Counted from the first letter of the stretch, positions 23,782 to 56,831 are shown. The stretch: DNA of 56,975 bases from Octopus bimaculoides (GCF_001194135.2 NC_068986.1:55258480-55315454), one strand, 5' to 3'. Translations and numbers: made by a program. Notes: a model not told the origin generated them from the sequence alone.

Positions 23782-23953
23782 ATGCGTTACGTGGCCGCTT
23801 ATCTCCTTGCCACCCTTGGGGGTGTGAAACAACCAACTGAAGCTGATTTGGAGAAGATTTTAGGCAGCGTTGGTATTGAGGCCGAAGCCGGTAAAATGAA
23901 GAAAGTCATCTCACAGCTAAAAGACAAAGACCCAGCTACTCTCATCAAAGAAG
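23782..23953 (+). CDS. RPLP2: 60S acidic ribosomal protein P2, coding exon 1
   Basis: cag|aATG; MRYVAAYLLATLGG...LIKE+G; donor GT at 23954. Confidence 0.98.
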
Positions 23954-24380
23954 GTAATTTTGGCACTGCCACATTTATTTATTTATTGTTCATGTTGCCC
24001 TTTACTTTTCTTCTTTTCTTGTCTTGCAAGTTACTTGGTAACTTCTGTTGGCACAAAGGAAAACACCCAATACACCCTGTAAAGGGATGGTCATTAGGCA
24101 AGGATTTTGGTTGTTGAAATCGTGCCAAAGGTGGCATAGAGAATTGTGTTGCCCTACGACAGTCGTCTGGCTGGTCAGATCTTGTCAAACTGTCCAACCC
24201 ATACCAGCGTGAAAAACAGACATTAAATGATTGTGACTTTCTTTTTCTTTAAATTGGGAGTACGTGTGAGTCAACATTACTCATGTGTGCAAACAAAAGG
24301 TGGTCATAGAACTCAACCTGTCTTCTGGTTGCTTGAGCTGCTTGGAGGATAAGGTACTAGATAACTACAAACTGGAGTTA

Positions 24381-25770
24381 CCATCATCATCATCATCGTT
24401 TAACGTCTGCTTTCCATGCTAGCATGGGTTGGACAATTTGACTAAGGACTGGGGAACCAGATGGCTACACCAGGCTCCAATCTGATTTGGCAGAGTTTCT
24501 ACAGCTGGATACCATTCCTAACGCCAACCACTCCGAGAGTGATGTGGGTGCTTTTACGTGCCACTGGTGCTCTGGTAACGATCACACTCGGACGGTGCTC
24601 TTAGTGCTCCACTAGTACGGGTGCCATCACGATTTCGCAAGCCGAGTTTGATGTTCAATGAAAGTGACGTTGACGTGGGTGCCGGTCTACAAATTTAGTT
24701 TGATTTCTATTGCCTCAACAGGTCTTCACAAGCGGAGTTTAGTGTCCAATGAAGGAGTGTTACACATAAGTGGGCTGGCAGAGGCCTTGGATTTTGGTCT
24801 CACTTGGCTTGCCGGGTCTTCTCACGCACAGCATATTTCCAAAGGTCTTAGTTACAAGTCATTGCCTTGGTGAGGCCTAATGTTCGGAGTTCATGCTTCA
24901 CCACCTCATCCCAAGTATTCCTGGGCCTGCCTATTCCACGGGTTCCCTCAACCGCTAGGGTGTGGTACTTTTTCACACAGCTATCCTCATCCATTCTCTC
25001 CACATGACCATACCAGCGCAATCGTCTCTCTTGCACTCCACAACTGATGTTTCTTAGGTCCAACTTTTCTCAAGATATTTACACTCTGTCGGGTATGCAC
25101 ACTGGCATTACTCATCCATCGGAGCCTACTGGCTTCTTTCCTTGCAAGCTTACGCATGTCCTCAGTAGTCACGGCCCATGTTTCACTGCCATGTAGCATG
25201 GTTGTTCGTACACATGTGTCATGCAGTCTGCCTTTTACTCTCAGTGATAGGCCCTTTGTCGCCAGCAGAGGTAAGAGGTCTCTGAACTTTGCCCAGGCTA
25301 TTCTTATTCTAGCAGCTACACTTGGTCACCCAGATATTGGAAGCTATCAACTACGTCCAGTTTTTCTCCCTGGAATGAGACTGGTTGTTTTCTGCACATT
25401 TTCAGTGTTTATTGCACCTGAACATCTACCACATACAAAAACTAACTTCCCAGTTAGCCTTCCTTTGATATTGCTGCACCTCTTATGTGTCCATAGCTTG
25501 CATTGGGTACATCTTATAAAGTTTCTACCTACACCTTTTCTACAGATCGAGCAGGGCCATCTACCTGAAGGGGTGTGTGTTTTGTCTACCTTCCTACTTA
25601 TTTGGACTTTGGTTTTAGCTAGGTTGACTCTAAGGCCCTTCGATTCTAGTCCCTGCTGCCACACCTGAAACTTCTCCTCTAGTTCTGATAGTGACTCAGC
25701 AATTAGTGCAAGGGTATCCTGTGTTGAATTTGGTTTGCATAAAGGTTGGTTTAGGGGGTCTTTACTCAAA
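24381..25770 (-). mobile_element. 5'-truncated RTE-clade LINE, antisense in RPLP2 intron 2
   Basis: RT C-terminal part, Cys-rich CSICRK...CTQCKLWTHKRC...CGRC insert, MLHGSETWA and RRLRWYGHVERM motifs; (GAT)n tail at about 24381. Confidence 0.9.
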
Positions 25771-25985
25771 GAGAGATGAAAGTTGTGATGGATGTGCAGG
25801 TTGTGCCCTTTCGCTAAAAGAGCCTACAAAATTTGTTGCAGTGATATAATATGCTAGTGCCTTCAATTCTATTTCTTGACTGTAGTTCCTTAGAAATATT
25901 GTTTCTGAAGTTTCTTGGTCAGTATATTTATTCATAACGACAGTACTTGGATGTGATTGGGTTTTCTTTTTCTATTCTTTCACAG

Positions 25986-26081
25986 GTCAGCTGAAGCTTG
26001 CATCTGTCCCAAGTGGAGGTGGTGCTGCTGTTGCTGCTGCACCTGCTGCCTCTGCTGCAGCACCTGCAGAGAAGGCTGAAG
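25986..26081 (+). CDS. RPLP2: RPLP2 coding exon 2 (Ala-rich hinge; missed by the ORF track)
   Basis: cacag|(G)QLKLASVPSGGGAAVAAAPAASAAAPAEKAE+G|GTGAG; phase matches the neighbouring exons. Confidence 0.97.
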
Positions 26082-26224
26082 GTGAGAGGCCAAATATTTC
26101 CTCTTCATTTATCTTTCCTCTATTTCGCTTTTGCTTTTTATTATTAATATTATTTATATATATACTTCAATTTCATTCTGTATTTTTCTAATATGTATTT
26201 TTTTCCTTTAATTCTCCACTACAG

Positions 26225-26295
26225 AAAAGAAAGAAGAGAAGAAAGAGGAGTCAGAAGAATCAGATGATGACATGGGCTTTGGTCTCTTTGACTAA
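26225..26295 (+). CDS. RPLP2: RPLP2 coding exon 3
   Basis: ctacag|(E)KKEEKKEESEESDDDMGFGLFD*; total CDS 339 nt (112 aa); ATTAAA at 26323-8. Confidence 0.98.
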
Positions 26296-28011
26296 GGATC
26301 ATCTATCATTTTTTTTTTCTCCATTAAAGCTTATCATTGTATAAATTCTTGTTTTACTTTTTTATATATATATATATATATATATGATCATTAATGTTTT
26401 GTTTCTAGTAGTTGTTGGGGTTGGAACGATGATCTGGATGCAGTCTATCTGAAATTTACACGTAATTTCATTTTGTTGAGTTGCTTTTGTGCTGCAAAGT
26501 GTGGATTCATTGGGGACATTGTTAATGCTTAATCAAGAAATATTTTTTCATTTCGCTGCACATTAATCGTTGGAATAATTGAGAATATAAAGCTTATTTT
26601 TGCTGTTCTTCATACTTGGATAAATCAACTTCTGTTTGCAGGTCCTGTTTGTGTACGTAAAATTTTGAATTTATTTGGAAAAATAAATGGTTAGTTCAAT
26701 CGCTGCCTGGTGATATAGTAACATACTATAATATATAAATTATTAGTTGGTAGAATACACAGTATAGCTCTGAAGCAGTGTGGTGTGACATATGGATCTT
26801 ATATTTGCACCTTGTGATCCTTGGATTATTCAGTGTTGGTAAATTAATGGAATAATTAGTAGGTTGAACTTGAAATGTTAAGTCATGGGTTTGTATCTGC
26901 CAGAGATTATTCATCCATTTTGGGATTGGCCTTATTAGCTCATACAAATTATCTTATATCCAGCTGAGTTTACTCCATCCCTGAACAAATACTTGCAGTG
27001 CCATGTGTGGAGCTATATCTCATTAATATCTGGAATTCAATTCTTATTCGTGTTAATTTCTCCCATAATTGCAGATTTTGCTCTCTCCAAATAGAATTTG
27101 TTTTTGACCAGAAGTGCACTCCTGTCATATATGCATTTTATACTGGCACTAGTCAGGTAGCTTTTGTGGTTTTAGTGGTTGTTTACTCCTGTGCAGATTC
27201 ACATATGCTTGTGTGTTTTATCTTGGCATAGGTTTTACTGCTGCATGTCCTTTCAAATGCCAGCAACTTACTGTTAGTACTTTAGTGTGTTGTGGCATCA
27301 GCACTAGTGAAGTCCACTGCAATACTAATGAGTTTTCTGCTTTGTAACTCACTTGCCTCAATATATTTTGACATTGAATTATGGACTAGTGACTATTGTT
27401 AATGATGGTTAAGCAAAATGTTGAGCCTTACCAAACTATGAGGCAGTATATGTAATAGTTCTTACATCAGATTTTGTAGTTGTACTTTTAATTTGTATTA
27501 ATATTTAAAACATTATTACTCTTGCTGTTATCCACAGGCATTTATAAATTTTAAAAAAAGTACTTCTGATTGCTTCAAACTTGTGGCCACTAGCCCTGAT
27601 AATACATTGCACTACCTTCAAATAGTTTGCCTATGTGCTCACATTTTAAAAGTAATGAAGACAAGTGTATACAACAGTACTACCTGAAACCTTGAATCTC
27701 TTCAGCAATCTAGTACAGTTTCCATCAAACCAGATCCATTATGGAATTATTCTTATGTCATCCATCACTGGACTCTAACCTCAGAAATTCAGTGGAAGTA
27801 TTTAATCATCTATAATATACAAGCCTATAAAAACTGTTTACCTTGACTCCATTTTATTTCTTGGATTAATAGCTTCCGATCAGATTGTAATAAACAATCA
27901 CATCATTGAAAGCTCAAAGCTGTGAAATAATGAATGATTAGTTCAAAAACAATTTGATTAAAAAAGCATGTTTTTCCTGTCTGAAAGAAATTGCTGCTGC
28001 TTCCTCTAGAG

Positions 28012-28146: not shown

Positions 28147-28349
28147 CTCTAGATCTGACAGGTAACAAAATTTAGCTTCTTCTGGCAGCTTTCAATACCT
28201 TGGCCGTTTTGTTTCAGGAAAATACATCATTACTTTGGTTTGATTCAAAACTCTTAAGCTGCTATTTGTAATAAGCTGAGTGATTGTCTATAGTCTCCAA
28301 GATTGTGCAGTACATTTATCAGAAGATAAGTCGTCCCTCAACTTTAAAA

Positions 28350-29130: not shown

Positions 29131-30193
29131 AATTATTTTTTAGTCAAGTTTTGTGATATGGCCTATGAAAATTAAGATGTATCCAGAAATAGATGGTTTA
29201 TCTGGTATGCTTTCAAGAAATTTATCCAGGTTTCGTTTGAAGGTGATGGGAACCTTCTTTGAATTTGTCTTGGGATAATGTTAAATGGCGCAAAGCCTGT
29301 TGAAAAGAAACTTTATTACAGTGAATTTATGTGTTGAGAGCCTGAATTGTGTCTGGCATGTGGCCCCAGCCTTTGATGAATTCTGAATTTAATTCTAAGG
29401 TCGTTTAGGTATTGTGCAAATGATGTAGCGTTGGAGAAAAAAATTCAATGCTTTAAGACGATCTCAATAATCAAGATCAGTCATGCCCTTAATTTTTCTT
29501 AGAATTTAAAATTTATTTTTACACTGGAAGTGTTCAAGAACGGTCTAAGTTTTACTAAAAGCACAACCACCTTTGTAACGAAACCAATTAGTAAATTTAT
29601 CTTTATTTTCCTAGATACATAACCTGGTGATTAGAGCATGGAAATATTATTTTACATAGAATCAAAAAAGGAGAAAAAATTAATGTAACTGCGAAGTATG
29701 AACCCAGAAACAATAAGAAACCGTGAAAGTAAACGAAGATAACAAAACAGATATTACAACTGAGCAATTAAGAGTCCGTGAAGTTCTGAAAAAGAATTTT
29801 AAGGAAACTCTTCGGAGGGCACGAACATGAAAAATTTTTCAGTTTGTGTTATCGAAGCAGAAAAAAATTGTACCAAATTACTTTCTTTGAAGAATGTTAA
29901 TTACAAAATCTATTACGATTTGTGCATTTCTGTTAATAGAAATAATAAAGTTGCCTATATTTTCTTTTTATTCCGCTAACGTTTTAAATATATTTGGATA
30001 CACGGTTACATTAATATATATGTATGTATATATAGACACATCTGTAGACAATATTTTACATAAATCGACTTACATTTTTTACCCAAGATAAAAAAAAAAT
30101 TATGATTATAAGAATATATTTAACGAAATCTCGTTTTCATATAATAGTGCCACGGCATATATATATATATATATATATATTTATAAACGTGTG

Positions 30194-30287
30194 TATATAT
30201 TGAGCGAACCACGTGCCTGTTTACTTTATCTCCATCCATAAAACCAGTTTGTGGCACCTTAGATTTTTCTTGTCCTGTAAAGTAAGT
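30194..30287 (+). promoter_or_regulatory. Putative TATA + TCT/TOP-like start and first exon (about 30224-30281)
   Basis: TATATAT 30194-30200, CACGTG at 30210, ctttatctccatcc from 30224, taaa|GTAAGT donor at 30282. Confidence 0.5.
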
Positions 30288-33014
30288 TAGTTTTAATTTT
30301 CAAAAATCTATAAATACACTCTCACGGATATATTCCACACGTTTGTTACATTAATTTCGTGTTTTGATTTAAATCTATTCCGTATGCAGATATCGTTACG
30401 TACGGTTATGAGTGAATAGATATTTACATTTACGCTAACTTGCGGATATAAACTTTTAATTTCCAGTTATGAATATAATATGATTTAAGGATCTGTTACC
30501 AAAACTTTAAGTACCAAAAATATAACCGCAAAATGCATTTATTTTCTTTCAGTGAAGCGCCGTTTTGAGAGGCTGTTAAAATAGATATGATTTTTCGGAG
30601 TTAATTATATTAAAACTGCGGGAGTAAAAGACTTCGACTGATACAGTGGGTTTGAATCATGAGATGTCACGTTCAAAATAGTGGAATTCGATGAAAGCAC
30701 TTGCTTTCATCGTTAATGCAAACAAGCACTACATAAAAAATATATTAGTTGTCTATCTCCACGTAACCCCACTTGAACTCATTTCACTGAGTGTGACTAT
30801 CCTATTTCTTTTGTTGTAATTTAGAGTATTTACTCTATCATTTTCTTATTTGAGACTGTAGGGAAGAGGACAGTTGACTGCTATTTCTAACAAGCAAAGA
30901 CTCTTACTGGTTCGGAAAACTTCGTTCTGTTATAGTAGGGTTATAGTTCTAGTTTAAGTGTTAATAAAACAAATACATATTAAATATATAATAAACTGTT
31001 TAAATTAAACCACCAGTCCTTTGATTGGCAGAATCGTTAGAACGTCAGCGAAAATATCTTCGGTATTTAGTCAAGTTCTTTTTTTTACGTTCTGAGTTCA
31101 AATCCTGCCGCGCTCATCATTGCTTTTCACTCAAAGATCTATTAAATAGGTAGTAAGATCAATTTAATATTCTTATAAATCATCCTCAAGGAGGAATGAG
31201 ATTATAATATATTATTTTGAAGCTTGTAAATATCGTACATAAACAAAGTACAGCTGTCTGAGGGGTGTTTACAGAGAAACTATTATAAAAAAAGAAATAT
31301 GAACGGAAATGAAGCATCCGATTAGATCAGTCTTGGACAGCCTGCGGGCGGCCCGCGGGACTTACTGAATGGCACACCCAACGAAAAATTACCTTGAATG
31401 TTTTAGCAGCGTGAACCACGTCTTATGTAGCTTGCTTCTCGAAAACGGTTGTTCGTGCCAGAATTAGAGGGACAGCCACTGAGATGAATCGGACTCCACA
31501 AATCTTGGATTATTATTTCTCCGAATGCTTTAGTAGTATTATAGAGTAGGTTGTGTATACTTCATCTACTGTCAGAGCACCACGGTTAGGCTTCACTGTA
31601 CCATGTTGGCACAGACTAGCAGTCGATTGAATCGGCTCCAGTACTTGATTGGTAATTCTATTTTTATTAACCCCAGAAGAAAGGGTGGGGGAAAGAAAAA
31701 TATATGCCTATGTAAATAAAGAAGGAAAGAATAAGAGTGCTAGGAAAATAAAGGAAATAAAAAGGATTACATCCAGAATTGTGATTGGTCTTTTAAATAA
31801 ATGAATAAATATATATTAATATTTCTACAATACAATATTATAGATCCATTTTTGCTAATGGTTTCGCCCATGAGTGTTAGGGGAAAACCCAATCACGGTG
31901 CTCGTCAGAAAAGCTGGTAGGAAAAAATTGGCTTTTTAAACAATTTCCTCTGTCGAGTTCTACACAAGGATGTTAATTTAAACACATGCACACACACATA
32001 GCTACATGCTCACCACACAGATATTGATAAAGGACACATTGCACGAACAGATACATATACACACAACACAAACATTGGTGCATAGACATCACACAGATAT
32101 GTACATACAAGCAAACCACATGGACATAAAGATAAATACATACAACAAGATACATGCACACATCTCAATAGATAAAGGTATGGATATATAAACTTAGATT
32201 AGAAAGAAATCTTTTTTTTTTAATTTTAATATTAGTGCTTTACATTTTCTACATATGTGTGACAGTAAGATTTATGAAATAAATTGAAGTAATAATGTTT
32301 GCTTTTATTAGCATATAAAATGTAAGCTGTTGACTGGAGAACACTCTAAACCTGTACAGAGAGTGGACTTTTAGCAATAATGTATTGCCAGAATGTTTAC
32401 AATCTGTTCACTGCACTTCTAAAATTTTCGCAACTTGTTAAGCTACCCAAATTCTAACTACAGGAGCTATACAAAAAAAAAAAAAATATTTCCAATATCA
32501 GCAATAAATAAATATTGCTCAAGGCTAATACAAAAAGCCTCAGGATATGAATTCAAACTGCATCCAGTAATGGGACCCTGGCTCAGGAGTTTCGGTGTTT
32601 TGAGGAATGTAGAACCACCTTAACCACTATTGTTCCTAGGTCTACCCTGACCCAGAGTAGTACTACTTGCCAGGGTTCCAACTTTGGGTTGAATAAATAA
32701 CACGTAACCACCCAAGCCAGAGTACAGTGAAGTCATGGAATGCAGCATAATGGTATGAACTATTTCAACAGCAAACCACCAGTGCCCATCTGCAGCAGAA
32801 CCTTCCAAGCATGCACCAGCCTGATCAGCCACAGATGCACCATGACCCATCTTCTCCTGCATGATGTCCTTGGTCATCATCAACAGTAAATATTACTATA
32901 TTTGATATACCAGCAGTAACCGGACTCTGGTGGAACTGCACTGTATTGTAGAGAAGAGAAGGACAGTTACAGAGCAAGAAGGTGGAATGATAGGGATTTA
33001 TATAAACAAAGCGA

Positions 33015-33371
33015 AATCATGATGGCACCTGTGCCCAGCGTCGCCTTTCTGGCACTTGTGCCCATGGCATGTGTAAGGACTTTCGAGCGAGATCATTGCC
33101 TGTGCCCCTGGACTGGCTGTTGTGCAGGTGGCACATAAAATACACCATTTTGAGCGTGGCCGTTGCCAGTACCGCCTGACTGGCCTTCGTGCGGGTGGCA
33201 AGTAAAAGCACACACTACACTCTCTGAGTGGTTGGCATTAGGAAGGGCATCCAGCTGTAGAAACTCTGCCAAATCAGATTGGAGCCTGGTGTAGCCATCT
33301 GGTTTCACCAATCCTCAGTCAAATCGTCCAACCCATGCTAGCATGGAAAGCGGACGTTAAACGATGATGAT
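33015..33371 (+). mobile_element. RTE LINE/SINE 3' end
   Basis: ccactacactctctgagtggttggcattagg...gcggacgttaaacgatgatga. Further copies at about 35850-36437 and 39128-39318. Confidence 0.85.
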
Positions 33372-34225
33372 AATTCCATATATACATATGAACACCCATG
33401 TGCATTTCCTCACTCTCATCACAGCTAATGAGTTGTACCAATCTTCAAAATATGATATTGTTTTCAAATTTTGATACAAGGCCAGTAATTTCAGTGTAGT
33501 GGGTGAGTCAATTACATCAACCCCCATACTTAAATGGTACTTATTTTATCGACCACAAAAGGATGAAAGACAAAGTCAACTTTGGTGGAATTTGAACTCA
33601 GAATGTAAAGACAAACGAAATTATACTAATCATTTTTTCCAGCTTGCCACCGCTTTCTAGATATAAGTTTGGGGGAGGGGTTAAGTCAATTACATTGTGC
33701 CAATGTACTTATTTTATCAACTCTGAAAGGATGAAAGGCAAAGTCAACCTTGGAAGAATTTTAACCCAGAACATAAAGACAGATGAAATACCACTAAGCA
33801 TTTTGCTTAGCATGCTAACTATTCTACCAGCTCACACAGCCTTTCTTCTGATTGTAATATTAAAAAAGTAAATTTTAAGCAGCAAACTAGTGATTAGTTT
33901 TCTCTTCAAAACCTTATATAGTTAGTTGAATTACTGGCTGAATAAGTGCAGGTAAGCAGAGTCAATTGATTATGTGGCATGATTAACATTATAACTTCCC
34001 CAATGGATCTCTGTTCAGCATCTAATAAAATGTCAACAACTTATCAAAATAAAACATTTATCAACCAGATCCAGTTCATTACTGCTTATAAGCAAAACAA
34101 CATTTAAGCATTAAACTGTAATTGATATTCAACTATTAATTAGTAATTAAAGCATATATTACTTTGAAATAATAAATTTATTGCAACATAAACGATATCC
34201 ATTAATCTGTTTCAGGTTTTTCAGA

Positions 34226-35275
34226 ATGAATCTTGAAACCAGGCGGGACATTTTGCGTTGTTATTATGCATCAAGGAATTCTCCTGTTGCTGCCCTTCGT
34301 TTATACAAAAAAGAAAAGGGATTAAAGCATGACCCTTGTGATCCAACGACTGTTACTAAACTTGTTAAACGTTTTGAAGAAACTTACACTCTCATGGATA
34401 AGCCAAAATCTGGTCGCAAATCATTGGCGGATGAACGGAGAAGCTTGATTGAAGATGCAAAAACATATCTGCAAACAACATCCATACGTGCTATTGCTGC
34501 AGCTACTGGAATTCCAAAATCATCAGTTTACCGTTTACTGAGAAATGATCCCGAGTTGTATCCTTATAAAATGTCACTGGTAGAAGAGCTCAATGAGTGG
34601 GACAAACCCAAACGCCTTGTCTTTGCCAATTGGCTTCAGGAAAATGTCCATTTGATCTCACGCATTCTTTGGAGTGATGAAGCCCACTTTTATCTTGATG
34701 GGAGAATTATTCGCCATAACTGCAGAATCTGGAGTCGACACAAAACAGAAAATGATTTAGAACTGTCTTTGAATGGTCCCAGACTAACTCTGTGGATGGG
34801 ATTCACATCTGAATTTGCGCTGGAACCATTCATCTTTGACGAAAATGAACACATCAATGCTGATAATTATCTGGCTATGTTGCAACAGCATGTGCGACCT
34901 CAACTTGTTAGAAAAGGTAAACTTTCTCAGACAATTTTCATGCAAGATGATGCACCAGCACATTTTGCACCAGCCGTAAAAGATTTTCTCATTAACACTT
35001 TCACTGCGGAACGCGTGATTTCTCCTGGCTGTTCTAATGAATGGCCACCACGATCCCCTGACATAATACCAGTAGACTATTGGTTTTGGGGGTGTCTAAG
35101 ATCTAAAATTTTTCATAATAACTGTCCAACAACTCTGTTTGAAATGAAATGCAAAATCATAGAAGCATGTAATAATTTCACTATAGAAGACTTTTCAGCT
35201 GCTGTTGCTAATCTACCAAAGCGTGTTGAGCACTTAATACAAGCTGCAGGTGGGCATATTGATCATATTGTATAG
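34226..35275 (+). CDS. Intact Tc1/mariner DD41D(Visitor)-family transposase, 349 aa, DD42D spacing
   Basis: Uninterrupted ORF; HTH N-terminus; WSDEAHF, QDDAPAH, WPPRSPDIIPVDYWFWG; 42 residues counted between D2 and D3; no TIR found by eye. Confidence 0.9.
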   Translation: MNLETRRDILRCYYASRNSPVAALRLYKKEKGLKHDPCDPTTVTKLVKRFEETYTLMDKPKSGRKSLADERRSLIEDAKTYLQTTSIRAIAAATGIPKSSVYRLLRNDPELYPYKMSLVEELNEWDKPKRLVFANWLQENVHLISRILWSDEAHFYLDGRIIRHNCRIWSRHKTENDLELSLNGPRLTLWMGFTSEFALEPFIFDENEHINADNYLAMLQQHVRPQLVRKGKLSQTIFMQDDAPAHFAPAVKDFLINTFTAERVISPGCSNEWPPRSPDIIPVDYWFWGCLRSKIFHNNCPTTLFEMKCKIIEACNNFTIEDFSAAVANLPKRVEHLIQAAGGHIDHIV

Positions 35276-35332
35276 CTGGACATATCAATCAATGTGTTTA
35301 TATTTCTCTAATGTACATATATATATACTTTA

Positions 35333-35488
35333 TTATTAAAGCTGCAAAAATATCACAAAATATTGCTACTCAGAGTTTTATGATTCTGTTCATCAAGCAG
35401 TTGTGATCCATTCTTGATCATAACTGCTTGATGAACAGGAAAGTGAAACTCTGAGTAGCAGTTTTTTGTGATGTTGCAGCTTTAATAA
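35333..35488. repeat. 156-bp palindrome
   Basis: ttattaaagctgca...tgcagctttaataa; 23-bp inner stem around the loop at 35409-15. Confidence 0.85.
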
Positions 35489-36929
35489 CAGAGCATATTA
35501 CTCTACCTCCAGTATTCGAGTACTATTTTTTTCCACCTTGTTTCNNNNNNNNNNNNNNNNNNNNNNNNNNNNNNNNNNNNNNNNNNNNNNNNNNNNNNNN
35601 TATATATATATATATATATGTGTGTGTGTATATACACACACATACATACATGCAATCATTTACTGTAAATGTTTTTCATCTTTGCAAACATAACTGATTC
35701 GTGAAACACATAAATAAAATCAACATTTAAAATGTACAATGTATTAATTACACAAATTTTAAAACCTTACCTCTTTTAATTTACTATCATTGAACTAGCA
35801 TAAATGTAAACACATAACTGGAAAAGGACTAAATAATATATATCAACATTTGAAGATCATGCTTCAGCACCCAGGAAAGACATGGGACAAGATGTTGAAG
35901 CATGATCTTCAAATGTTGGGTTATACGAAAGCAATGACAAGTGACCAAGACCTTTGGTGATATGCCATGCTTGAGAAGACCCGTCAAACCGAATGAGATT
36001 GTAGTCATAGTTGATACCAGTGTCACGTAACTGGCATATAAAAAGCACCCTTCAAACGTTGTGTGATATGCTGTGCTTGAGAGTCGTGGCTAATGTCAGT
36101 AACATCTGACTGGCACCCATGCCAGTGGCATGTAAAAAGCAACGTTCAAGAGTTGGGCCTCACAGAGGCAGTGACAGGTGACTGAGACCTTTGGCAATAT
36201 ACTGTGCTTGTGTAGACCTGTGAAGCCAAGTGAGATCATAGTTGTGGCCAATGCCAGTGGCACGTAAAAAGCACCCACTACACTCTTGAAGTGGTTGGCA
36301 TTAGGAAGAGCATCCAGCTGTAGAAATTTTGCCAAATCAGATTGGAACCTGGTGAAGCTCCCCAGCTTACCAGTTTTCAGTCAAACTGTCCAATCCATAC
36401 CAACATGGAAAGCAGACGTTAAATGATGATGATGATGAGTATTTTAATTTTCAAAACAAATTTGTTTAATTATACTGAATAATAACTTGGAAACCCAAAA
36501 GTAAAATTTCTAAAATGTTTAAGCTTCAAAAGTCTTTAGAATATTAATGTATAATATGAGAAGTAAATACCCAGTAAAGCAAACCTTGTCAATATTTAAT
36601 ATACCTGGTGCAAAAGTTTCAACTGAATTTTAAATTGGTAGTCTTTTTTCATTTAACATTATCTAACATGAGACAGACCCTCCAGAAAATCAAATAACAT
36701 CCCATTCACTATATCATCACCACTATCATCATGGGTCAGAATTTGTTACGGCTAATATTCTACAGTTGGATACTCTTCTTGTTACTAACCTCCACTTGTT
36801 CTGGACAAGGTATATACCTAACTATGAGTATCTTACATCAATGAAAGAATAAGTCCTATATCCTTAGACATAGTCACTTTAACCAGTGTTGTAGAAGTAC
36901 TATGATGACACACTAACATACAGATACAA

Positions 36930-37056
36930 CAGGGTGTCCACAAGGTCTGGATACATGGAGTAAGTAAAATCATAACATTAACAATTAAATATAAGAAATA
37001 ATAATTTCTTAAAGTATGTGTTAATCCCTGTGTACCCAGACTTTGTGGACACCCTG
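36930..37056. mobile_element. 127-bp MITE with CAGGGTG-type TIRs
   Basis: 25-bp TIRs with 2 mismatches. Confidence 0.8.
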
Positions 37057-47631: not shown

Positions 47632-47703
47632 GTACTAATTGTGATGATTAGATATCGCCCCAGTCTGAATTGTGTGACTGAATCGATATAACTGATTTAG
47701 TAC
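47632..47703 (+). ncRNA. SNORD31: C/D snoRNA, SNORD31/snR67-like, copy 1
   Basis: Stem gtactaa/ttagtac; C 47641-7; guide tatcgccccagt; D' 47665-8; D 47692-5. Confidence 0.9.
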
Positions 47704-48586
47704 TTGACTTTATAAGGAATATATGGTAGTAGAAAATGGGATGCTCTTCCTATTCAGTAAAACATTTGGTAGTTAAAGCTACTGTGGACGTTTGCATTAT
47801 GGTCCATAGAATAAAGGTGTTAGTATTGCAAATTCATCTTGAAGGTTTCTTAATATTCCTATTATCAACACATGGAAATTGTAATTGCCATTATAAGTCA
47901 GCAATTGAGGTTTTTGCTTCACTAAAATTTAAAATTTTAAAGGCTTGTAACTTTTTCATTATTTTTTCTGTAAAAAGAATTTTAATATATATATATGCAC
48001 CAGCATGACCGCAGCCACTTGGCTGAAACCCATAAATAAAAAAATATATATATACACCAATCACCTGTGTATATCACATGTTTTAATGTCCACTTTTCCA
48101 TATTTGCATGGAGAGCTAGAATTCTTTGAGGCAAATCTCCTATGACTGGATGCCTTTTATGTCATCAGCTGTCACCTGTTTCTAAGCAAGGTAATATTTT
48201 TTCCCTATGGCAAGCTTGGAGATAAACATTTTGTATAATGACATTTGTATACAACTATTATGTAATGTGAAGATAAGTGCATATATATATACATGACTTG
48301 CATCTTTCGGTTTCCATCTGTCACATTCCCTCATGGCTTTCATTGGCCTAGGATGCCTGTGTTAAATATTCCAGTTAAACATTTAAAGTATTAAGTAGTT
48401 AAATGACTTTTGTCAAAAACTCATTGCTGTGGCCTGTGGCCCCTTTTATGTACCAAAGGAATCCATTACTCATTGTTTCAGGTTATACTCTCTCTTTTAT
48501 ATAAGGTGGCATCAAAGATGCTATTAGTTAAATCAAAATATTCCCGTAAAAACTAGATGTTTTCAAAGCAGTGTAAGATCTTGTAA

Positions 48587-48664
48587 GTGTACTTATTGTG
48601 ATGGATAAGATATCGCCCCAGTCTGAATTATCTGACTGAATCGATATCACTGATTATAGTACAC
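48587..48664 (+). ncRNA. SNORD31: SNORD31-like copy 2
   Basis: C GTGATGG; guide intact; D' 48623-6; D 48650-3; stem gtgtact/agtacac. Confidence 0.85.
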
Positions 48665-49464
48665 ATTACAGGAAGTATTACACTGGACAACAATTTGTTT
48701 TTTTAATTTTCTGTAGTGTGAGGGTTTTTTTTTTACTGATTCTGTCTTTGTGCTATTTCAAATCTGTAATTTGTTTTGCTTTCCATGCTCTAGTTTTCTT
48801 GCAATTTGAAGATTAACTTTTTATACGTTTATTGTTAAATTTGACATTGAGATACATATATCCTATTTAAAAAGAATTGCCAATTATTTTTACAGATCTG
48901 ATCAGGTCTTCAGGTAGATATAGATGTGTGAATAATCCTGATGGCTTTTACATACACACATGAAGCAGGTAAGAACAAATATGCAAGGCTTTTTTTCTTC
49001 AAGTTTAAAATAGGACATTGCTAGCATAATTTCGTTATATCTATATTCCACAACACATAAATACATAAAATCGGAACAGGCACAGACAAGAACAAGCACA
49101 CACACACAACCCATTAGTTTTCTTCTCATCCCATTTCAGCAGCTGTCATGGAGATATCCGAAGTGAACTGTCGAGTTATATCGAGGAATGCCACTATGTC
49201 TGGTTACTTTGCTTTTATTTGTCAAAAGCATGGTTTTGATAATTGAATGTTTGAGAAGGTGCTTGCTGCATACATTTAGTGCAACAGCAGTTTACTGATA
49301 AATTTCTTCGTAACACTTGTCTACATAGCAATACCATTTGTAACTTTGTTGAAGAAAGTGAAGAACTGGTAGTTGTAGTCCAAGCTTGTATTGTTGCAAA
49401 GGACATCTGTCATAGATTTCATCCATAATCTCTGCATTCCATATTGTGACTAGCATGCTATGAT

Positions 49465-49528
49465 TGTACTTAATGTGGTGAGTTAGATATTACCCTCAGT
49501 CTGAATTGCTGTAGCTGTTTATAGTACA
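49465..49528 (+). pseudogene. SNORD31-like copy 3, degenerate
   Basis: C GTGGTGA, mutated guide attaccctcagt, D box lost. Confidence 0.75.
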
Positions 49529-49982
49529 TGTTACAGGAAATATCAGCTCACATAGCATAGTCATGAAGTGTTTATAGTTTTCAATTAGACATTCAACCTG
49601 TTTGTAACTGCAGAAGTGTCTTGAAATATCTTGTGTGGGTAGGGTGCTGTTTTTGAGAATCGTTAACTTCGTGATTTCTAAAAGATTTGAAACTGGTGCT
49701 AATGTTTTAGTATTTAGGTTTCTGGGCACTACTTTAAATGCAGAGGTCTCAATACATCATTGTAAAGATATGAAGAGGAGGGTTAGTTTTTAGGGTGTCA
49801 TTACACATCCACACAGCATACATTTAAAATGTTCTGTATGTAATACCTGTATTTAAGTAGTACCAGTTTCTGTTTGTATTTTATTCCTTGACTGTGCTTT
49901 GGACATATTGAGAAAGATCACTGAAGTTGGTTTTCGATATTAGATTAATGACAAACTTTAAACTCTGGATGTTTTGAGGTTA

Positions 49983-50057
49983 GTATAGCTTTGTGATGAA
50001 CAAGATATCGCCCCAGTCTGAATTGTGTGACTGAGTTGATATAACTACATTTAGTAC
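49983..50057 (+). pseudogene. SNORD31-like copy 4, D box mutated
   Basis: C 49993-9 and guide intact; D box reads CTAC. Confidence 0.7.
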
Positions 50058-50214
50058 AAAGTTTAATGCTTTGAAATCTTGTACAGGAATGAGTCAGAAA
50101 GTTGTACAATTTTTTGTAAGAGACGCATTTTCCTAGGAAATTATTTGATATTTGGTACAGATATAAATGGCACATATGCTTTTGATCTTTAATTATTGAA
50201 TTTTTTTTTTTTTT

Positions 50215-52030
50215 TTACCTCTCATCTAAATGAATAAGTGGGACAATAAAAGAATTGGCTGTTTTTACTGGGAGTCCATCAGAAGCTAAGAGCTGTAATT
50301 GAGTTCCTTGTTGCTGAAGAAACTCTTGTTAACATTCACAGAAGACTAGAAAACGTTTCTAAAGATAAGGCTTTACAATATAGCAATGTGTGGAGATAGG
50401 CTCACTGATTAAGAAAACAGTTCAGAGAGAATTGAGAAAATTCAAGCTTAGCAGACATGTCTTGTAGTGGCCACCTATCAACTTCTGCTAACCAGGAAAA
50501 AACAGATGTTTTAATTAGTTGATAGATGCATCAACACCTGGAGATAGCCATGGCAGTTTTCACAGCACTATTGAATCACTTGGATATTCAAATGTGCCTG
50601 CTAGATACCAAAACAACCAGCAGATGAGCACAGGACTGAAAGTGTTAACTGTTGTGCTGAAATCCTTGAACTAAGTAAAAGAGATAAAAACTATTTTTCA
50701 CTTGGATTCATCGTTATGAACCAGAATGAAAGTGACAATCAATGGAATGGTATCATGCAATGTCAGCTGAAATAATCGTGCTGTCTTTTGGGGTGTTCAT
50801 AGTGTTAGTTGGGTCAATTTCTTACAAAGAGGAGAAACCATCAACTCTGAAGCATACATTTCGACCCTTAACCCTTTCGTTACTTAGCCGGCCGAAAAAT
50901 TTTTTGGTTCATAAGACTAACCCGGCCGTACCCATTGTTATTTAAATGTATATTTGAATCCAAATTTCGTTAGTAAATTCGTTCAAACACCTGATTTCAC
51001 TTTGCAAACAGTTGAGTTATTGTCTCTGACATTATTTGGCGTGATATTTGAACTCAGTGAATTTTGGAAGATTTTTTTCCACATATTTTGCGGCGTTAAT
51101 TTTTTTCAACAGAAGATATGGAGATATCGAAGAAAAGAATGAACGAGCTACAAAAGCACGTGGTGAACGATAATGAATCGGATATTTCTGTATCCGAAAC
51201 TGAAAGCAGTGAGGATGATTTTACACCAGAAAAAGATTTTAAAAATATTTTTATTAACAATTTTTCTGAGGAAACGGGGTCTACCCAGTCTTTCTCAGGA
51301 AGCGAAACCTTTAGACTTCTTTTTCATGCTTGTTTGAAATGATTACTGCGGAAACAAACCGTTAAGCAGAATGTAAACAAACCGGAAAAAAAAAGATAGT
51401 TTGTGGTTTCCTGCAACTGTAGATGAAATACAGGCATTTTTTGCCATAAATATTATTATGGGTATTATTAGACAATTACCCAGAATAACAAATTACTGGA
51501 GCGATCAGGAACCTTTTGCCGATGAATATATTTCCAGTATTATGAATGAGTACAATTCGTGAAGCTGAACCAATATTTACATGTGAGAGACACTAGCAGT
51601 ACCCCCCCCCCGTACGTAGAGAACTTAGAGACAAAAATTATGCAATAGAATTGATTAAGAACCCTTTCTTTAATTATGTTCCAAATATCACATTAATATG
51701 TTGATAAATAAAAAAGTTACAGGTGTTTAATGAGACTAGTCTAAATTCATGATTATTTTAGAATTTAGTTGAAACTCATGAGGGGTGTATTTTGGCCAGA
51801 AATATAGTAACGAAAGGGTTAAAAGGTTACAGCAAAACCTGCCGAATAGACTAAATCTGTTCAATGATGGGCCTAGTTCAAGCTTCAGAACAAGGGAAGC
51901 AATCACCTTTTTTTGAGTGGACAAATCTGTCCCTCCTTGCTCACATAGCTTTGCAGCTTCAGACTTCCATCTCTTTGGCCCAATAAAAGAGACACTGAGA
52001 GGTAAACATTATGGTGATGATCAAGGAGTC
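50215..52030 (+). mobile_element. mariner relic split by piggyBac
   Basis: RAVIEFLVAEE..., WIHRYEPE; ETINSEAYISTL|KRL reads through the TTAA; SDFHLFGPIKETLRG. Confidence 0.75.
50872..51818 (+). mobile_element. Deleted piggyBac, related subfamily
   Basis: TTAA 50868-71 and 51819-22; TIR CCCTTTCGTTAC. Confidence 0.88.
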
Positions 52031-52235
52031 ACTTGGATATTCAAATGTGCCTGCTAGATACCAAAACAACTAACAGATGAGCACAGGACTGAAAGTGTTA
52101 ACTGTTGTGCTGAAATCCTTGAACTATTGGATTCATCATTATGAACCAGAATGTTGTCATCAGCAACACCATCATTATCACCTTTGGTCATACCCTTCCC
52201 CAATTATATTGGGTTGTAACATTTTAACTTTATTG

Positions 52236-52308
52236 GACTAATTGTGATGAATAAGATATCGCCCCAGTCTGAATTGTGTGACTGAATCAATATAACTGAA
52301 TTTAGTAC
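52236..52308 (+). ncRNA. SNORD31: SNORD31-like copy 5
   Basis: C 52244-50, guide intact, D' 52269-72, D 52296-9. Confidence 0.88.
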
Positions 52309-52774
52309 ATGTTAACTATAGAAAGGTTTCACAGCAAGAGAAGACAAGTTATTGTAAAGAATTAGCTGTGTTACCACCCTGTGGAGTTTTATGAAGTTGG
52401 ATTATATGCCCTCATTCATAGGTGTAATACTGCCATTGAAAGACGTAACGACTGTTCAGAAGTAGGTATGTGAACCTGCGATAGATAGTTATAATAGTTG
52501 TACAATTTGTTTCATCGTGTTCTTATTTTTATATAATAAAACTAATTGCATTACTTTCCGACTCACTAATGGTTATAGATAAGGGTTGTCTCTATCTGAA
52601 TTGTTTTACTCAATTGTAATTGTTGACTGTACTGCCTAGTTATTATAATTTCAAGTTGCAATTACATTTGTAGGTATGCCTAGACACTGTATTGAATGAT
52701 AATTTTTTGGTTATTATTCTAAATGAGATCATTTTAACTCTCATGACTATATTTCTAGCTAAAAATACTCTTAA

Positions 52775-54095
52775 CCCTTTCGTTACCATATTTCTAACCA
52801 AATTACACCCCTTATGTGTTTCAATTAATTTCTAACATAATCATAAATTTAGGCTGGTTTCATTAAACAATAACTTTTTTATTTATCAACATATTAATGT
52901 GATTTTTGGAAGATAATTTAACAAAAGGTTCTATACCAAAATTTTTGTCACAAAGTGACTTTAATTACAGGTGAAAACAGGTAAATTCAACAAAATATAA
53001 AATTATTAAAATTTTTGTTCAAACATCGCTATAGAAAATGGGTTATTAGCTAATATTCAATTGGGTATACAACAAAATATTATAGAAGAGTTGTGCACAT
53101 TACTGGATTTATTACTGTCTCTTTTGCCAGTATAAAATTAAAATCCAGAGCAGTACCCAGTATTTGATTCACAAATCTTTTCCAAACTTTGATCCCCCAT
53201 TTTGTGTGCTTTCCTGGCATATACTGTTGAAAACGCACTCGGCCTTTATAGCCCACCATATCCTCATCTATAAACTGTTTTATATGTGCTTTGAACAGTC
53301 AATGAGGGGTCTTATTTTAAATAAGGGATCACAGTCTGGTTTTCNNNNNNNNNNNNNNNNNNNNNNNNNNNNNNNNNNNNNNNNNNNNNNNNNNNNNNNN
53401 NNNNNNNNNNNNNNNNNNNNNNNNNNNNNNNNNNNNNNNNNNNNNNNNNNNNNNNNNNNNNNNNNNNNNNNNNNNNNNNNNNNNNNNNNNNNNNNNNNNN
53501 NNNNNNNNNNNNNNNNNNNNNNNNNNNNNNNNNNNNNNNNNNNNNNNNNNNNNNNNNNNNNNNNNNNNNNNNNNNNNNNNNNNNNNNNNNNNNNNNNNNN
53601 NNNNNNNNNNNNNNNNNNNNNNNNNNNNNNNNNNNNNNNNNNNNNNNNNNNNNNNNNNNNNNNNNNNNNNNNNNNNNNNNNNNNNNNCGGAAAATGAAAC
53701 CTCAGATTCATTATCAAATACCACGTGCTTTTTTTTTCGGTTACAGAGTTAGATTTATCAAGGTCTTCAACGGAAAATCCTTCGAATTCTGACTCGCTGC
53801 TTGACAGAATAAAATTCGTATCCATTTTTTTTGTCAGGATTACAAATTTTGAAAACAACAGGAACAAATTTGGAAAAAAATCTCACAAAATTAAAAAAAC
53901 ACGTTGGTCGTCGTACAAAACTATAGCTGAACTGTTTACACAAATAATCACGTGTTTTCACGAATGTACTAACGAGATTTGCTCGGATATTCTCATTTAA
54001 ATATGAATAGGTGATTACAGGCGGTTTTGGGCGGCTTGGTCACATGAACCCAAATTTTTTTCCAGGCGGCTTTGGGCGGTTTGGTAACGAAAGGG
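52775..54095 (-). mobile_element. Deleted piggyBac, near-identical to 21249-22727
   Basis: TTAA 52771-4 and 54096-9; same TIR and internal sequence in reverse orientation. Confidence 0.92.
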
Positions 54096-54293
54096 TTAAT
54101 GCACTTTAGTTAATATAACTAAGAACTTAATGCTTGTGACATTTTTTTTTTCTTTTGAATATGGTGCTTGGAATAAAACATGTTTACAGTAATCTATTGT
54201 GAAATTATACGTTGTCATCAGCAACACCATCATTATCACCTTTGGTCATACCCTTCCCAAATTATATTGGGATGTAACATTTTAACTTTAATG

Positions 54294-54367
54294 GACTAAT
54301 TGTGATGAATAAGATATCACCCCAGTCTGAATTGTGTGACTGAATCGATTTAACTTGAATTTAGTAC
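54294..54367 (+). ncRNA. SNORD31-like copy 6, weakened
   Basis: Guide G>A (tatcaccccagt); D box reads CTTGA; lies in a roughly 190-bp block duplicated from copy 5. Confidence 0.65.
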
Positions 54368-55845
54368 ATGTTAACTATAGAACGGTTTCACAGCAAGAGA
54401 AGACAACAGGTATATTTAATATTATTTGGTATTTGGTCAGGTACATTCATTCTATAATTGGGAGTACTCTTAGTAGGTATCTTTGTGTTCAGGTTCGTGT
54501 CTTTGTTTTAGAACTGTAGTTTGAAATAAGGCTGCTAAGTCTTTGGGAATTTGAGAGGTAATTGGACCATTCATTTAGAACTGTTGCATTCAAATTATCT
54601 TTTTAAAGCTGAATACTTTCAAAAATTTTTGATTGTGCTCAAATCATTTTTCTTTTTAACTATAAAGTTTAGCTTTGTTCAAAAGAGATATTGTCCATAA
54701 ATTGATATTTTTTTAGTTTAAATTGTACTCGTGTGTCAGCATCTACATAGAGAATATAATTTAAATCTATTTTTGCAGATTCAAAAGACACTATGGCTTC
54801 TCCATGGAAAAGTTGCATGAATGCTCTGAATGAACATTGGAAACCTATTTCTGATTTTGGCTTATGTGGAGGCAGCAGATATGGTACTAGGAATGAGTCA
54901 AACCAAATAGACTGCATACTAGGGACAAAATATGACTCTGAAGAGTGTACCACTCAGCATAGACTAGTGATTAGTGATTTCAGACTACGAGATGCAAGAC
55001 AGGATAATGAAGGTAAGGATATTGACCAGATGTTGGTGCAATTGGGAGTTTCCTATGAGAAACTTCCTGTAAATATAGAAAGCAAAGAATATTAAGTTAT
55101 GAGAATCGAGCATTGATTTATTCAGCTGTACATTGTTGAAATGCTGGTGTTATCTGATAAGGTAGATCTTGTGCTCTTCACTTGCATAATTAATCAGCTT
55201 TTTAATGAAATTTTCCAGAGATATCTGTTTTCGATGGTATGTTACAATTACATTGGTAAAACTTCAGTTTGTAGTTCATAATTGTTTTCCTGAAAGATTT
55301 TAGAGTTTCTTGAATAAACTGATTAAAAGTGCCACAAAAAGTTATGGGTGCTTCATTTCCTTTCATTTTAGCTTTCAGCATTTAGAAAAAGATGCATGTC
55401 CATTTTAATTTAACAAGATAAAATGTATCTGGTAAATTTCATGCAAACATGCATTTAGTAAAGTCTGCCAGGTCAAAGTGAGCCACTACATAATTATTAT
55501 CCTCATCACTGGAAAATTTCATAAAAGAAATGTGTATTTCTATGAGAGTTATAGGGAAACAGCCATTAGGCTATACCAGTAATAGGCATGTTTGATGAGA
55601 TGGTGAAGAGAGCAAATTGGACTAGCTTAGGAAGAATGGCTTTTGCGTGTGTAGTTCTGTCATCAATAAGGTGAGTATACATGAACAATTTAGAGTTAAT
55701 GCCTCACATATATTTTAGACTAAATATACATATATGAAACTATTTCTTCTAGAAATGCTTGTATTCTTTTTATATATATATATATATTACAGTAGTTACA
55801 GTTTTTGGATTCAAAATATCCTAATATTGGATACTTGTAAATTAG

Positions 55846-55909
55846 TGTACTAATTGTGATGAATAAGATTGAATTGTGTGACTGAATCGATATAACTGAT
55901 TTTAGTACA
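55846..55909 (+). ncRNA. SNORD31-like copy 7, guide deleted
   Basis: C 55856-62, D 55896-9 and stem intact; the 12-nt atcgccccagtc is missing. Confidence 0.65.
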
Positions 55910-55919
55910 TGCTTATCTT

Positions 55920-56165
55920 TGATCTTTTACTTGCTTCAGTCATTAGACTTCAGCCATTCTGTGACACTGTATTGGTCAAGTGGTGATGAGGGAACGAACA
56001 AAGGCACATGCACACAATGGACTTTCAGTTTCTGTCTACCAAATCTTCTCACAAGGTTTTGCTCAACCCAAGACATTTAGAAGGCATTTGCCCATAGCGC
56101 CACACAATGGGACTGAACTCTGAACCATATGGTTGGGAAGCAAGCTTCTTACTACACAGCCATGC
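55920..56165 (-). mobile_element. tRNA-derived SINE
   Basis: Reverse complement of the same SINE head and tail seen at 15609-16690. Similar copies at about 1340-1435, 7160-7600, 8020-8160, 11780-11960 and 44880-44985. Confidence 0.75.
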
Positions 56166-56756
56166 CCATGGGCATTGGTTTCTCCCCCTCTGATAAGTCC
56201 TATCACGATTGATTTCTACTTTTCACCTTTCTTGAGTCCTAATTAAATGAACATGAGGCAAGGAGTTGATTTAACACTTTCATTACCATCTGTCTACTGC
56301 CTTCACTTAGTTTTGGAAGTAGGGAAGAATTTAGTAAAATAGCTGGTGTTAGGAATGAAAATTAACATGAAATTGTGATGGAAGGTTTTTTAGATAACTT
56401 TATAAAAAGAGGTTGACATTCTGGAGGCAGTCCCGAGTGGTGTCAAAAAGGGTTAATTCAATAAATGTGTTTGTGTTAAAAAGTTTGAAACTCTCAAGTT
56501 TTATACTTCACTGTCAGCTTTGTACACCAGTGATATTGGGATCTATTGATTCTGATTTGTAGAGCGTTTATGTATTTCATTCATCATGGAATTAAGCTTT
56601 TGTTTGTAATGTAGTGGACCTTACAAACTCTTTGAATTGAATTTTTTCAAGTGGGATACGTATTGATAGAAAACAGGCTCACTTGTTTTTGCACTTTGAA
56701 GTAGTGACAAACTTTTAAACTACAAATGCTCTCTGGTTAGTTTAGCATCTTGATAG

Positions 56757-56831
56757 TGTACTAAAGTGATGAACATGATATCCGCCCCAGTCTGAATTTT
56801 GTGACTGAGTTGATATAACTGATTTAGTACA
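56757..56831 (+). ncRNA. SNORD31: SNORD31-like copy 8
   Basis: C 56766-72; guide ccgccccagt (10 Watson-Crick pairs to ACUGGGGCGG); D' 56792-5; D 56819-22. Confidence 0.9.

Follow-up and report, generated by a model that had tools for sequence, protein, structure and literature searches.

A Tc1/mariner-type transposase probably domesticated as a host gene in octopods

Results

An intact transposase-derived reading frame among decayed elements

Here we describe a transposase-derived gene of Octopus bimaculoides, located in a stretch of 56,975 nucleotides (GCF_001194135.2 NC_068986.1:55258480-55315454, referred to as the window), which very probably represents a host gene made from a rosa/Visitor-like (DD41-42D) transposase of the Tc1/mariner type. 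The window consists of animal DNA, which is AT-rich (about 35% G+C) and contains assembly gaps. Its longest uninterrupted open reading frame (ORF) is the one described here, starting with the ATG at position 34226 of the plus strand, ending with the stop codon at 35275 and encoding 349 amino acids (aa), and the public annotation of the protein reads "transposable element Tc3 transposase". The remaining ORFs resembling transposable elements (TEs) are fragments, namely a gap-broken piece of a piggyBac DDE_Tnp_1_7 transposase at 21524-22234 and reverse transcriptase pieces (RT/zf-RVT), which agrees with an initial annotation made from the sequence alone, according to which this was the only intact full-length transposase ORF among many decayed TEs. 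All sequence features named in that annotation were recovered, with a positional offset of one base at most. The features of the locus are summarized in Table 1.

Table 1 Features at the octopod locus, in window coordinates. A slash within a sequence marks a putative exon boundary.
Feature	Position	Strand	Description
RPLP2, upstream neighbour	23782..26363	+	coding exons about 23782-23955, 25984-26083 and 26221-26363; exon matches with Argonauta
Distal conserved block, candidate promoter and non-coding exon 1	30182..30318	+	function inferred from conservation
Octopus-only upstream block	33939..34170	+	includes the end of a proposed mini-exon, AAGTGCAG/GTAAGCAGAGTC (33944-33963)
Proximal conserved element	34171..34225	+	TTGCAACATAAACGATATCCATTAATCTGTTTCAG/GTTTTTCAGA; directly before the ATG
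Coding sequence, transposase-derived gene	34226..35275	+	single open exon, 349 aa plus stop, 1050 nt in four octopod species
Bipartite DNA-binding region	34232..34543	+	HTH1 aa 3-53 (Pfam DUF4817), KSGRK linker, HTH2 aa ~68-106 (Pfam HTH_IclR/HTH_23)
RNase-H-like catalytic core, aa 126-300	34601..35125	+	triad and fold matches
Catalytic codons	D151 34676-34678, D241 34946-34948, D284 35075-35077	+	family-profile alignment
MITE-like (miniature inverted-repeat transposable element) palindromic insertion, 176 bp	35323..35498	.	inverted repeats I1 and I3; directly 3' of the conserved block
SNORD31 C/D-box small nucleolar RNA (snoRNA) cluster, downstream neighbour	47634..56828	+	Rfam matches

The gene is found at the same place in distantly related octopods

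An exact look-up of the window's protein in public assemblies gave no record. A search for similar proteins yielded one 90%-identity cluster, which comprises proteins of Octopus vulgaris (CAI9724990.1) and Argonauta hians (GAB1609865.1) as well as short-read contigs from the runs SRR11869384-94. The latter (L003-L007) are referred to as the third octopod, and these contigs are too short to judge synteny. The O. vulgaris locus is collinear with positions 26720-46171 of the window, i.e. over about 19 kb. In Argonauta, a gene with a match to the Pfam family Ribosomal_60s, which corresponds to RPLP2 in the window, is located about 5 kb upstream of the ORF on the same strand, and five SNORD31 genes follow 3.5-5 kb downstream (L002 14553-15983). 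The order and strand of RPLP2, the transposase-derived gene and the SNORD31 cluster are thus equal in the window and in Argonauta. Because both the upstream and the downstream neighbour match, we conclude from the flanking sequences that the two loci are orthologous on both sides. The initial annotation had proposed to look for syntenic orthologues in octopods, and these were indeed found in O. vulgaris as well as in the distant octopod A. hians.

Single-sequence and profile queries of a collection of 5.8 billion proteins returned nothing in the range from 56% to 89% identity, and among the representatives of 50%-identity clusters P0001 alone was above 49%. On present data, the gene therefore appears to be confined to incirrate octopods.

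The reading frame evolves under purifying selection

The ORF has a length of exactly 1050 nt in all four octopods, without any insertion or deletion. Compared to O. vulgaris it differs at 32 nt, 23 of them at third positions (98% aa identity, synonymous divergence dS 0.108, ratio of nonsynonymous to synonymous divergence dN/dS 0.10), compared to the third octopod at 50 nt (98% aa identity, dS 0.21, dN/dS 0.047) and compared to Argonauta at 176 nt (89% aa identity, dS 1.10, dN/dS 0.051), with all ratios calculated by the pairwise Nei-Gojobori method only. Binomial tests against neutral expectation gave 2e-9, 1e-20 and 7e-51, respectively. The dS of the ORF against O. vulgaris equals the divergence of the non-coding flanks (K = 0.099 over 11166 aligned sites), and therefore synonymous sites behave neutrally, while replacement sites change 10-20 times more slowly. 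If 176 random substitutions, corresponding to the observed Argonauta difference, are introduced, the ORF survives in 1 of 20000 trials (5e-5).

The constraint extends over the whole protein: every domain has a dN/dS below 0.11, and against Argonauta none of the four segments, i.e. HTH1 (HTH, helix-turn-helix), the linker with HTH2, the catalytic core and the C-terminus, leaves the range of 0.01-0.08. The lowest values of the protein, 0.01-0.06 against Argonauta, belong to the DNA-binding region. A dN/dS near 1, which the initial annotation had named as an argument against co-option, was thus not observed. Since a copy that is fixed at one locus escapes selection for transposition, the constraint acts at the level of the host.

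The element has lost its termini and no further copies were found

An inverted-repeat search of the flanks revealed no repeat pairing around the ORF. The terminal inverted repeats (TIRs) of two complete mobile relatives (L009 and L010, see below) aligned to the ORF flanks no better than to shuffled sequence, and the best flank-to-flank inverted repeat identified de novo reached a score of 27 against a null maximum of 26, is AT-rich and is without counterpart in the other three species. These results corroborate the earlier observation by eye that TIRs are missing. We also considered the 176-bp palindrome downstream of the ORF as a possible element end and rejected it, because it is a separate hairpin-like insertion, which is shared with O. 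vulgaris only and the ends of which are unlike the TIRs of the relatives. Its arms are 85-88% complementary, it occurs once in the window, and it is present in O. vulgaris and absent from the third octopod and from Argonauta. Because the TIRs have been lost, the element is, to judge from its flanks, no longer mobile.

According to tblastn, the 57 kb window does not contain a second copy of the ORF. Near-identical copies were likewise absent from about 100 kb of fetched loci, and no other octopod protein was among the matches in two large protein collections, so that TIR-bearing near-identical copies, which the initial annotation had named as contrary evidence, were found in none of these sources.

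Two points weigh against the interpretation as a host gene. The presence of a single copy is suggested indirectly, i.e. by the one protein cluster, the clean assembly in five runs and about 100 kb of sequence without copies, and the purely pairwise ratios limit the selection test. The gene could alternatively be an ordinary, recently active or autonomous Tc1/mariner copy, whose frame is intact through youth or through selection for transposition. Such a copy would have the same architecture as a functional transposase and would keep its triad, as is the case here, it would deserve its database label as a Tc3 transposase, and the copy number is known from the window, the fetched loci and the protein collections rather than genome-wide. 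However, the gene is located at the same locus with orthologous flanks in three assembled genomes, and its divergence scales with species distance up to a dS of about 1.1, and it is therefore old. Moreover, selection for transposition cannot act at a fixed locus, yet dN/dS is as low as 0.05-0.10, and neither TIRs nor proteins between 56% and 89% identity were found. We thus regard an autonomous copy as highly improbable.

Domains, fold and active site of the protein

By fold and homology, the gene product is unambiguously a Tc1/mariner-type transposase of full length, in which two HTH domains at the N-terminus are followed by an RNase-H-like core. Pfam matches on the octopod protein are limited to the N-terminal HTH domains, with the HTH_IclR/HTH_23 match covering aa 85-106, and the DNA-binding region forms six helices in an AlphaFold2 model (mean predicted local distance difference test score, pLDDT, 86.5). 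A Foldseek search with this model matched full-length Mos1 (E 4e-14) and gave target-normalised template modelling (TM) scores of 0.8-0.88 against the catalytic domains of Mos1, Sleeping Beauty and SETMAR. By sequence, the best solved relative is the catalytic domain of Sleeping Beauty.

A profile of 37 family members could be aligned end-to-end with Mos1 (residues 9-345) as well as with the SETMAR DNA-binding domain. In this alignment D151, D241 and D284 correspond to D156, D249 and D284 of Mos1, and in the entry of the D249A pre-cleavage complex of Mos1 the profile places D241 at the mutated residue; the same residues also align with D153, D244 and E279 of Sleeping Beauty. The retention of all three catalytic aspartates, as proposed in the initial annotation, is thus confirmed, and so is the spacing of 42 residues that separates the second from the third (D2-D3 spacing), which we counted on the octopod protein. 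Seven changes are fixed in octopods, namely I104L, P174T, H183N, V189L, F203I, G242D and L307M.

Two of our observations speak against an unaltered active site. The Pfam family DDE_3 matches the relatives and stays below threshold on the octopod protein, and at the position of G242D, adjoining the catalytic D241, all 33 mobile relatives have a glycine. Because of these two observations, the core may have changed its function, and the location of G242D beside D241 suggests that the active site could have been retuned after co-option. An alternative is that the transposase was domesticated as a DNA-binding or architectural protein only, with an inactive catalytic fold serving dimerisation or scaffolding, similar to SETMAR or to co-options of the CENP-B type. 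This would be in line with the DNA-binding region being the most constrained part of the protein, with the change of a residue that is invariant in relatives next to D241, and with the fact that most known Tc1/mariner and pogo co-options make use of DNA binding (PMC13548663). On the other hand, all four species have retained the three aspartates over a synonymous divergence that is saturated, and the SPD..P.DYW motif is, like the triad, intact in every octopod. In addition, 53 of the 61 family-conserved columns (≥85% in the 33 mobile relatives) are unchanged in all four octopods, and the core evolves with a dN/dS of 0.045-0.053, which is as low as in the rest of the protein. Furthermore, the residue corresponding to 242 is N rather than G in Mos1 and Sleeping Beauty, and this position therefore tolerates polar residues. 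We consider co-option for DNA binding alone a contender, the chances of which fall somewhat short of even. The conservation of the core indicates that its catalytic fold is probably still needed; that the core also retains its catalytic chemistry is plausible, but unproven.

Mobile relatives of the octopod gene

We identified about 40 relatives, mostly on contigs of 1.2-1.8 kb, with a D2-D3 spacing of 41-42 residues (most close relatives have 42, several others 41). The two that were examined represent complete elements with TIRs flanked by TA: L009 has a length of about 1329 bp and a 37 bp TIR starting with CCGGGTTATTC, and L010 a length of about 1403 bp and a 31 bp TIR beginning with CAGGGTGTC (TA-CAGGGTGTCCGTAAAGTC...). 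The published rosa element Apismar4.1, which encodes 361 aa, begins with AAGGGTGTC (AAGGGTGTCTCAAAAAG for comparison with L010), and published rosa/Visitor (DD41D) members have a D2-D3 spacing of 40 to 41 (PMC5490172, PMC8472432). Because the TIR of L010 starts like that of Apismar4.1 and because the closest mobile relatives have the same spacing of 41-42 residues, an assignment to the rosa/Visitor (DD41-42D) lineage is reasonable, but not proven. Elements of this family have a length of about 1.3 kb and TIRs of about 30 bp starting with (A/C)AGGGTG, a pattern shown by L010, and the earlier assignment to the DD41D family is thus a plausible one.

In a neighbour-joining tree, which comprised the octopods and unnamed relatives only, the octopod sequences are monophyletic and nested among the mobile relatives, with the topology (Argonauta,(third octopod,(O. 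vulgaris, window))). The next match after the octopod cluster has 56% identity and a mobile-type QDGAPPH motif. The nearest named mobile relative (P0244; 51% identity, 353 aa, on a 1.2 kb contig) is annotated as Paragonimus westermani, a lung fluke. The closest mobile lineage is thus found in distant animal phyla, as expected for Tc1/mariner elements, which spread horizontally.

Conserved elements upstream of the ORF

Directly before the ATG, the proximal conserved element is identical at 52-53 of 55 nt among the Octopus species and at 38 of 55 nt in Argonauta, and the four species do not differ at all in the acceptor sequence TTGTTTCAG/ at 34207-34215. Nothing similar was found in the 5' regions of the mobile relatives. 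The element can be read either as a 3' splice site (AG at 34214-34215) or as a core promoter with a TATA-like and an initiator-like motif.

TATAAACGTGTG (30182-30193) and ACCAGTTTGTG lie in the distal conserved block together with a pyrimidine-rich tract and the donor AAA/GTAAGT (30281/30282), and all of them are common to Argonauta. Its part at 30211-30318 matches Argonauta L002 8070-8170 with 70% identity (E 2e-9) and represents the only unique Argonauta-conserved block between RPLP2 and the ORF. The candidate exon 1 (30224-30281) does not contain an ATG. According to these conserved positions, the best gene model would join a short non-coding first exon near 30224-30281 to 34216 at the acceptor 34215/34216, i.e. 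ten bases ahead of the ATG.

The initial annotation had proposed a spliced transcript with exon 1, a mini-exon at 33922-33951 and two acceptors before the ORF. Of these parts, the exon 1 region with its donor and the first acceptor (34214-34215) can be traced to Argonauta, whereas the others are not supported. The motif CAG/GTAAGC at 33949-33957, with which the mini-exon ends, occurs once in the window and is kept in the Octopus species, but is absent from Argonauta; since the model works without the mini-exon and the motif is restricted to Octopus, we removed it. The second acceptor (34223-34224) was dropped as well, because it is not conserved and reads CAA in the third octopod and TGG in Argonauta. 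The Octopus-only block that includes the end of the mini-exon is 96% identical to O. vulgaris, compared to 90.7% in the flanks, and 90% identical to the third octopod, compared to a neutral expectation of about 81%. The mini-exon motif is triplicated in the third octopod: upstream of the gene, AAGTGCAGGTAAGCAGAGTC is present there in three variant tandem copies (L003 166-250) and in one copy in the window and in O. vulgaris.

A TOP-like (terminal oligopyrimidine) promoter, in which transcripts start at a C with an unbroken stretch of 4-15 pyrimidines behind it, was not supported either: the pyrimidine run at 30224 consists of CTTT followed by A, reads CTTAATTATC in O. vulgaris and is not kept in either O. 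vulgaris or Argonauta, where the adjoining upstream sequence 30196-30226 is deleted, and only the pyrimidine-rich tract before the donor is shared between the species near exon 1. The resemblance to the start of RPLP2 proved correct: cag/aATG precedes the first coding exon of RPLP2, which starts at 23782, and the same context is found at the ORF, with the "a" at 34225. A fusion of the ORF to the RPLP2 coding exons was rejected due to a phase misfit, since a phase-0 donor would read GTT TTT CAG AAT GAA TCT TGA.

At the 3' end, conservation with Argonauta stops at the stop codon. The ATTAAA at 35335-35340, previously listed as a feature of the gene, is present, but lies inside the lineage-specific 176-bp palindromic insertion. 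Rfam matches to mir-297, mir-466 and mir-1277 at 35601-35663 were discarded, as they correspond to a (TA)n(TG)n simple repeat and are well under the gathering thresholds.

The spliced model is challenged by two facts. The short-read contigs L003-L007, which are of DNA or RNA origin, are unspliced through the proposed acceptor; we also looked for a spliced 5' exon in these contigs and discarded this option, because a comparison of L003 with the region at 30.2 kb gave no match for its first 165 nt, and because contigs and genome are collinear. In addition, the TATA-like reading of the proximal element also fits, which would make the gene intronless and would leave the distal block unexplained. 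The core promoter would in this case be located directly before the ATG, where 34186-34192 would serve as the (C/T)ATAAA box and TCAG at 34212-34215 as an initiator-like motif, and the block at 30.2 kb would be an enhancer or part of another transcript. The distance of about 27 nt between the box and TCAG corresponds to TATA-initiator geometry, and the box is a perfect TATAAA in Argonauta. For both O. vulgaris and A. hians, a single-exon coding range is given in the public annotation, the collinear contigs agree with an intronless gene, and 285 nt before the ATG are conserved above neutral among the Octopus species. However, TGTTTCAG/G represents a near-perfect metazoan 3' splice site, the near-consensus donor AAA/GTAAGT is conserved in the sole other unique conserved upstream block, and a longer unspliced leader would contain several upstream ATGs, while the candidate exon 1 has none. 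We therefore favor the spliced model and consider an intronless gene a less probable alternative.

Neighbouring genes and further features of the window

The RPLP2 exons in the window were located by tblastn with what we take to be the human RPLP2 sequence, which serves as a lead only. Upstream of its start exon, four blocks of 80-100 nt (18158-18246, 18931-19010, 20553-20655 and 23383-23462) are kept in Argonauta (L002 911-3534). The last of them contains the box-like motifs ATGATGA ... CTGA ... CTGA, and Rfam gives no match to these blocks, which may represent intronic C/D snoRNAs. An RPLP2 intron contains an ORF of 140 aa on the opposite strand (25347-25769) with a zinc finger of the PHD/C1 type, which we suspect to be the remnant of a retroelement.

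The downstream cluster consists of six tandemly spaced SNORD31 copies on the plus strand (47634-47701, 48592-48658, 49985-50054, 52238-52305, 54296-54364 and 56760-56828), one of which is under the gathering score, and these copies suggest the presence of a snoRNA host gene. Further upstream, at 45555-45646 (Argonauta L002 14169-14262), about 70 nt are nearly identical between Octopus and Argonauta, TGCACACTTTAAGAGCCTTTTCTCAATC.ATTTGGGTTTATGGTGTCTAACTGTGCTATACAAAA, including a clean TOP-like run of C plus pyrimidines, CCTTTTCTC. This block probably comprises the promoter together with the first exon of the SNORD31 host gene, or else represents another gene for a small RNA.

At the left end of the window, four equal-scoring tRNA-Phe(GAA) genes are clustered within 7 kb (545-617, 2266-2338 and 4811-4883 on the minus strand, 6758-6830 on the plus strand), beside a partial tRNA match at 3249-3310 on the minus strand. 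The piggyBac-type fragment mentioned above is present in two copies, at 21524-22234 on the plus strand and at 53280-53867 on the minus strand, which have the N-terminal peptide SSSESEFEGFSVEDLDKSNSV... in common and are both cut by assembly gaps.

Discussion

The domesticated transposase gene described here is real and well supported by its sequence and location. Co-option of a transposase with retention of its catalytic triad, as suggested in the initial annotation, is borne out by the syntenic orthologues, a dN/dS of 0.05-0.10, and the lack of TIRs and of extra copies in the sequences searched. Very probably, one element inserted between RPLP2 and the SNORD31 host gene in the incirrate octopod ancestor, before the split of Argonauta and Octopus, which dates back in the order of 100 million years. 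The inserted element then lost its TIRs and hence its mobility, and its complete frame has been kept at the fixed locus since, under strong purifying selection.

The product would most likely be a nuclear, probably dimeric, sequence-specific DNA-binding protein, the catalytic core of which is still needed. Such a core points to an enzyme with nuclease or strand-transfer activity at chromosomal sites, or at the minimum to a DNA-synapsing factor that depends on the catalytic fold, and the protein bears little resemblance to a transcription factor relying on its DNA-binding domain alone. It is even possible, though on the evidence at hand unlikely, that the enzyme is still catalytically competent and that the animal employs it to cut or join particular sites of its own DNA, such as the ends of relic transposons, or during repair or a programmed rearrangement. 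If so, it would have no described precedent in molluscs, with two modules kept rather than one.

The gene provides a clean lophotrochozoan case in which both modules are retained and the triad is preserved across synonymous saturation. For cephalopods, whose genomes are known to be rich in TEs and heavily rearranged, it is a concrete candidate for an enzyme of the host that cuts or synapses DNA. Its location between the housekeeping loci RPLP2 and the SNORD31 host gene may account for the gain of stable expression. The analysis also corrects the public label of the gene as the transposase of a transposable element. A literature search found no published description of the octopod gene, and the Octopus entries in a metazoan survey of TE-derived factors belong to other families (PMC10027918).

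Among mobile elements, the closest known counterpart is the rosa/Visitor family (DD41D; Crmar2, Apismar4; PMC5490172, PMC8472432), with a transposase of about 350-360 aa, a DDD triad, a long D2-D3 spacer and an HTH near residues 85-110, and the relatives of the octopod gene share with it elements of 1.3-1.4 kb, TIRs of about 30 bp and TA flanks. Unlike rosa/Visitor elements, the octopod locus is without TIRs, fixed in synteny and under host-level purifying selection, and its D2-D3 spacing counts as 42, not 41.

Among domesticated genes, the octopod gene resembles SETMAR (Metnase) of primates, which derives from Hsmar1, in that a transposase of the mariner superfamily was immobilised at one locus and retained by selection; the catalytic folds superpose (target-normalised TM 0.83-0.88) and the DNA-binding domains are related. 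SETMAR, however, has a SET methyltransferase as its fusion partner and an altered third catalytic residue (DDN), and its transposase-derived part reportedly acts mainly as a DNA-binding module (PMC13548663), whereas the octopod gene is stand-alone and full-length, has an intact DDD triad and is far older than the hominid-specific fusion. Pogo/Tigger-derived genes (CENP-B, TIGD, POGZ) also encode transposase-derived host proteins of the wider IS630-Tc1-mariner group, and expansions of CENPB and HTH-Psq have been reported in Octopus bimaculoides (PMC10027918), but these genes belong to a different branch of the superfamily, pogo, and mostly act as DNA-binding factors. In the strict sense, i.e. 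outside pogo, Tc1/mariner co-option has been described as rare, with the known cases keeping either the DNA-binding or the catalytic module (PMC13548663). The Drosophila genes CG14478, CG4570 and cag were recognized by the same criteria, namely loss of TIRs and target site duplications (TSDs), purifying selection and microsynteny (PMC13548663), and these three of the four published domestication criteria, the fourth being detectable expression, apply to the octopod locus as well. CG14478 retains a canonical DDE endonuclease fold, and the Drosophila genes each co-opt one module, either the catalytic or the DNA-binding one (PMC13548663). The octopod gene differs from them in having both modules in one protein and in its independent origin in molluscs.

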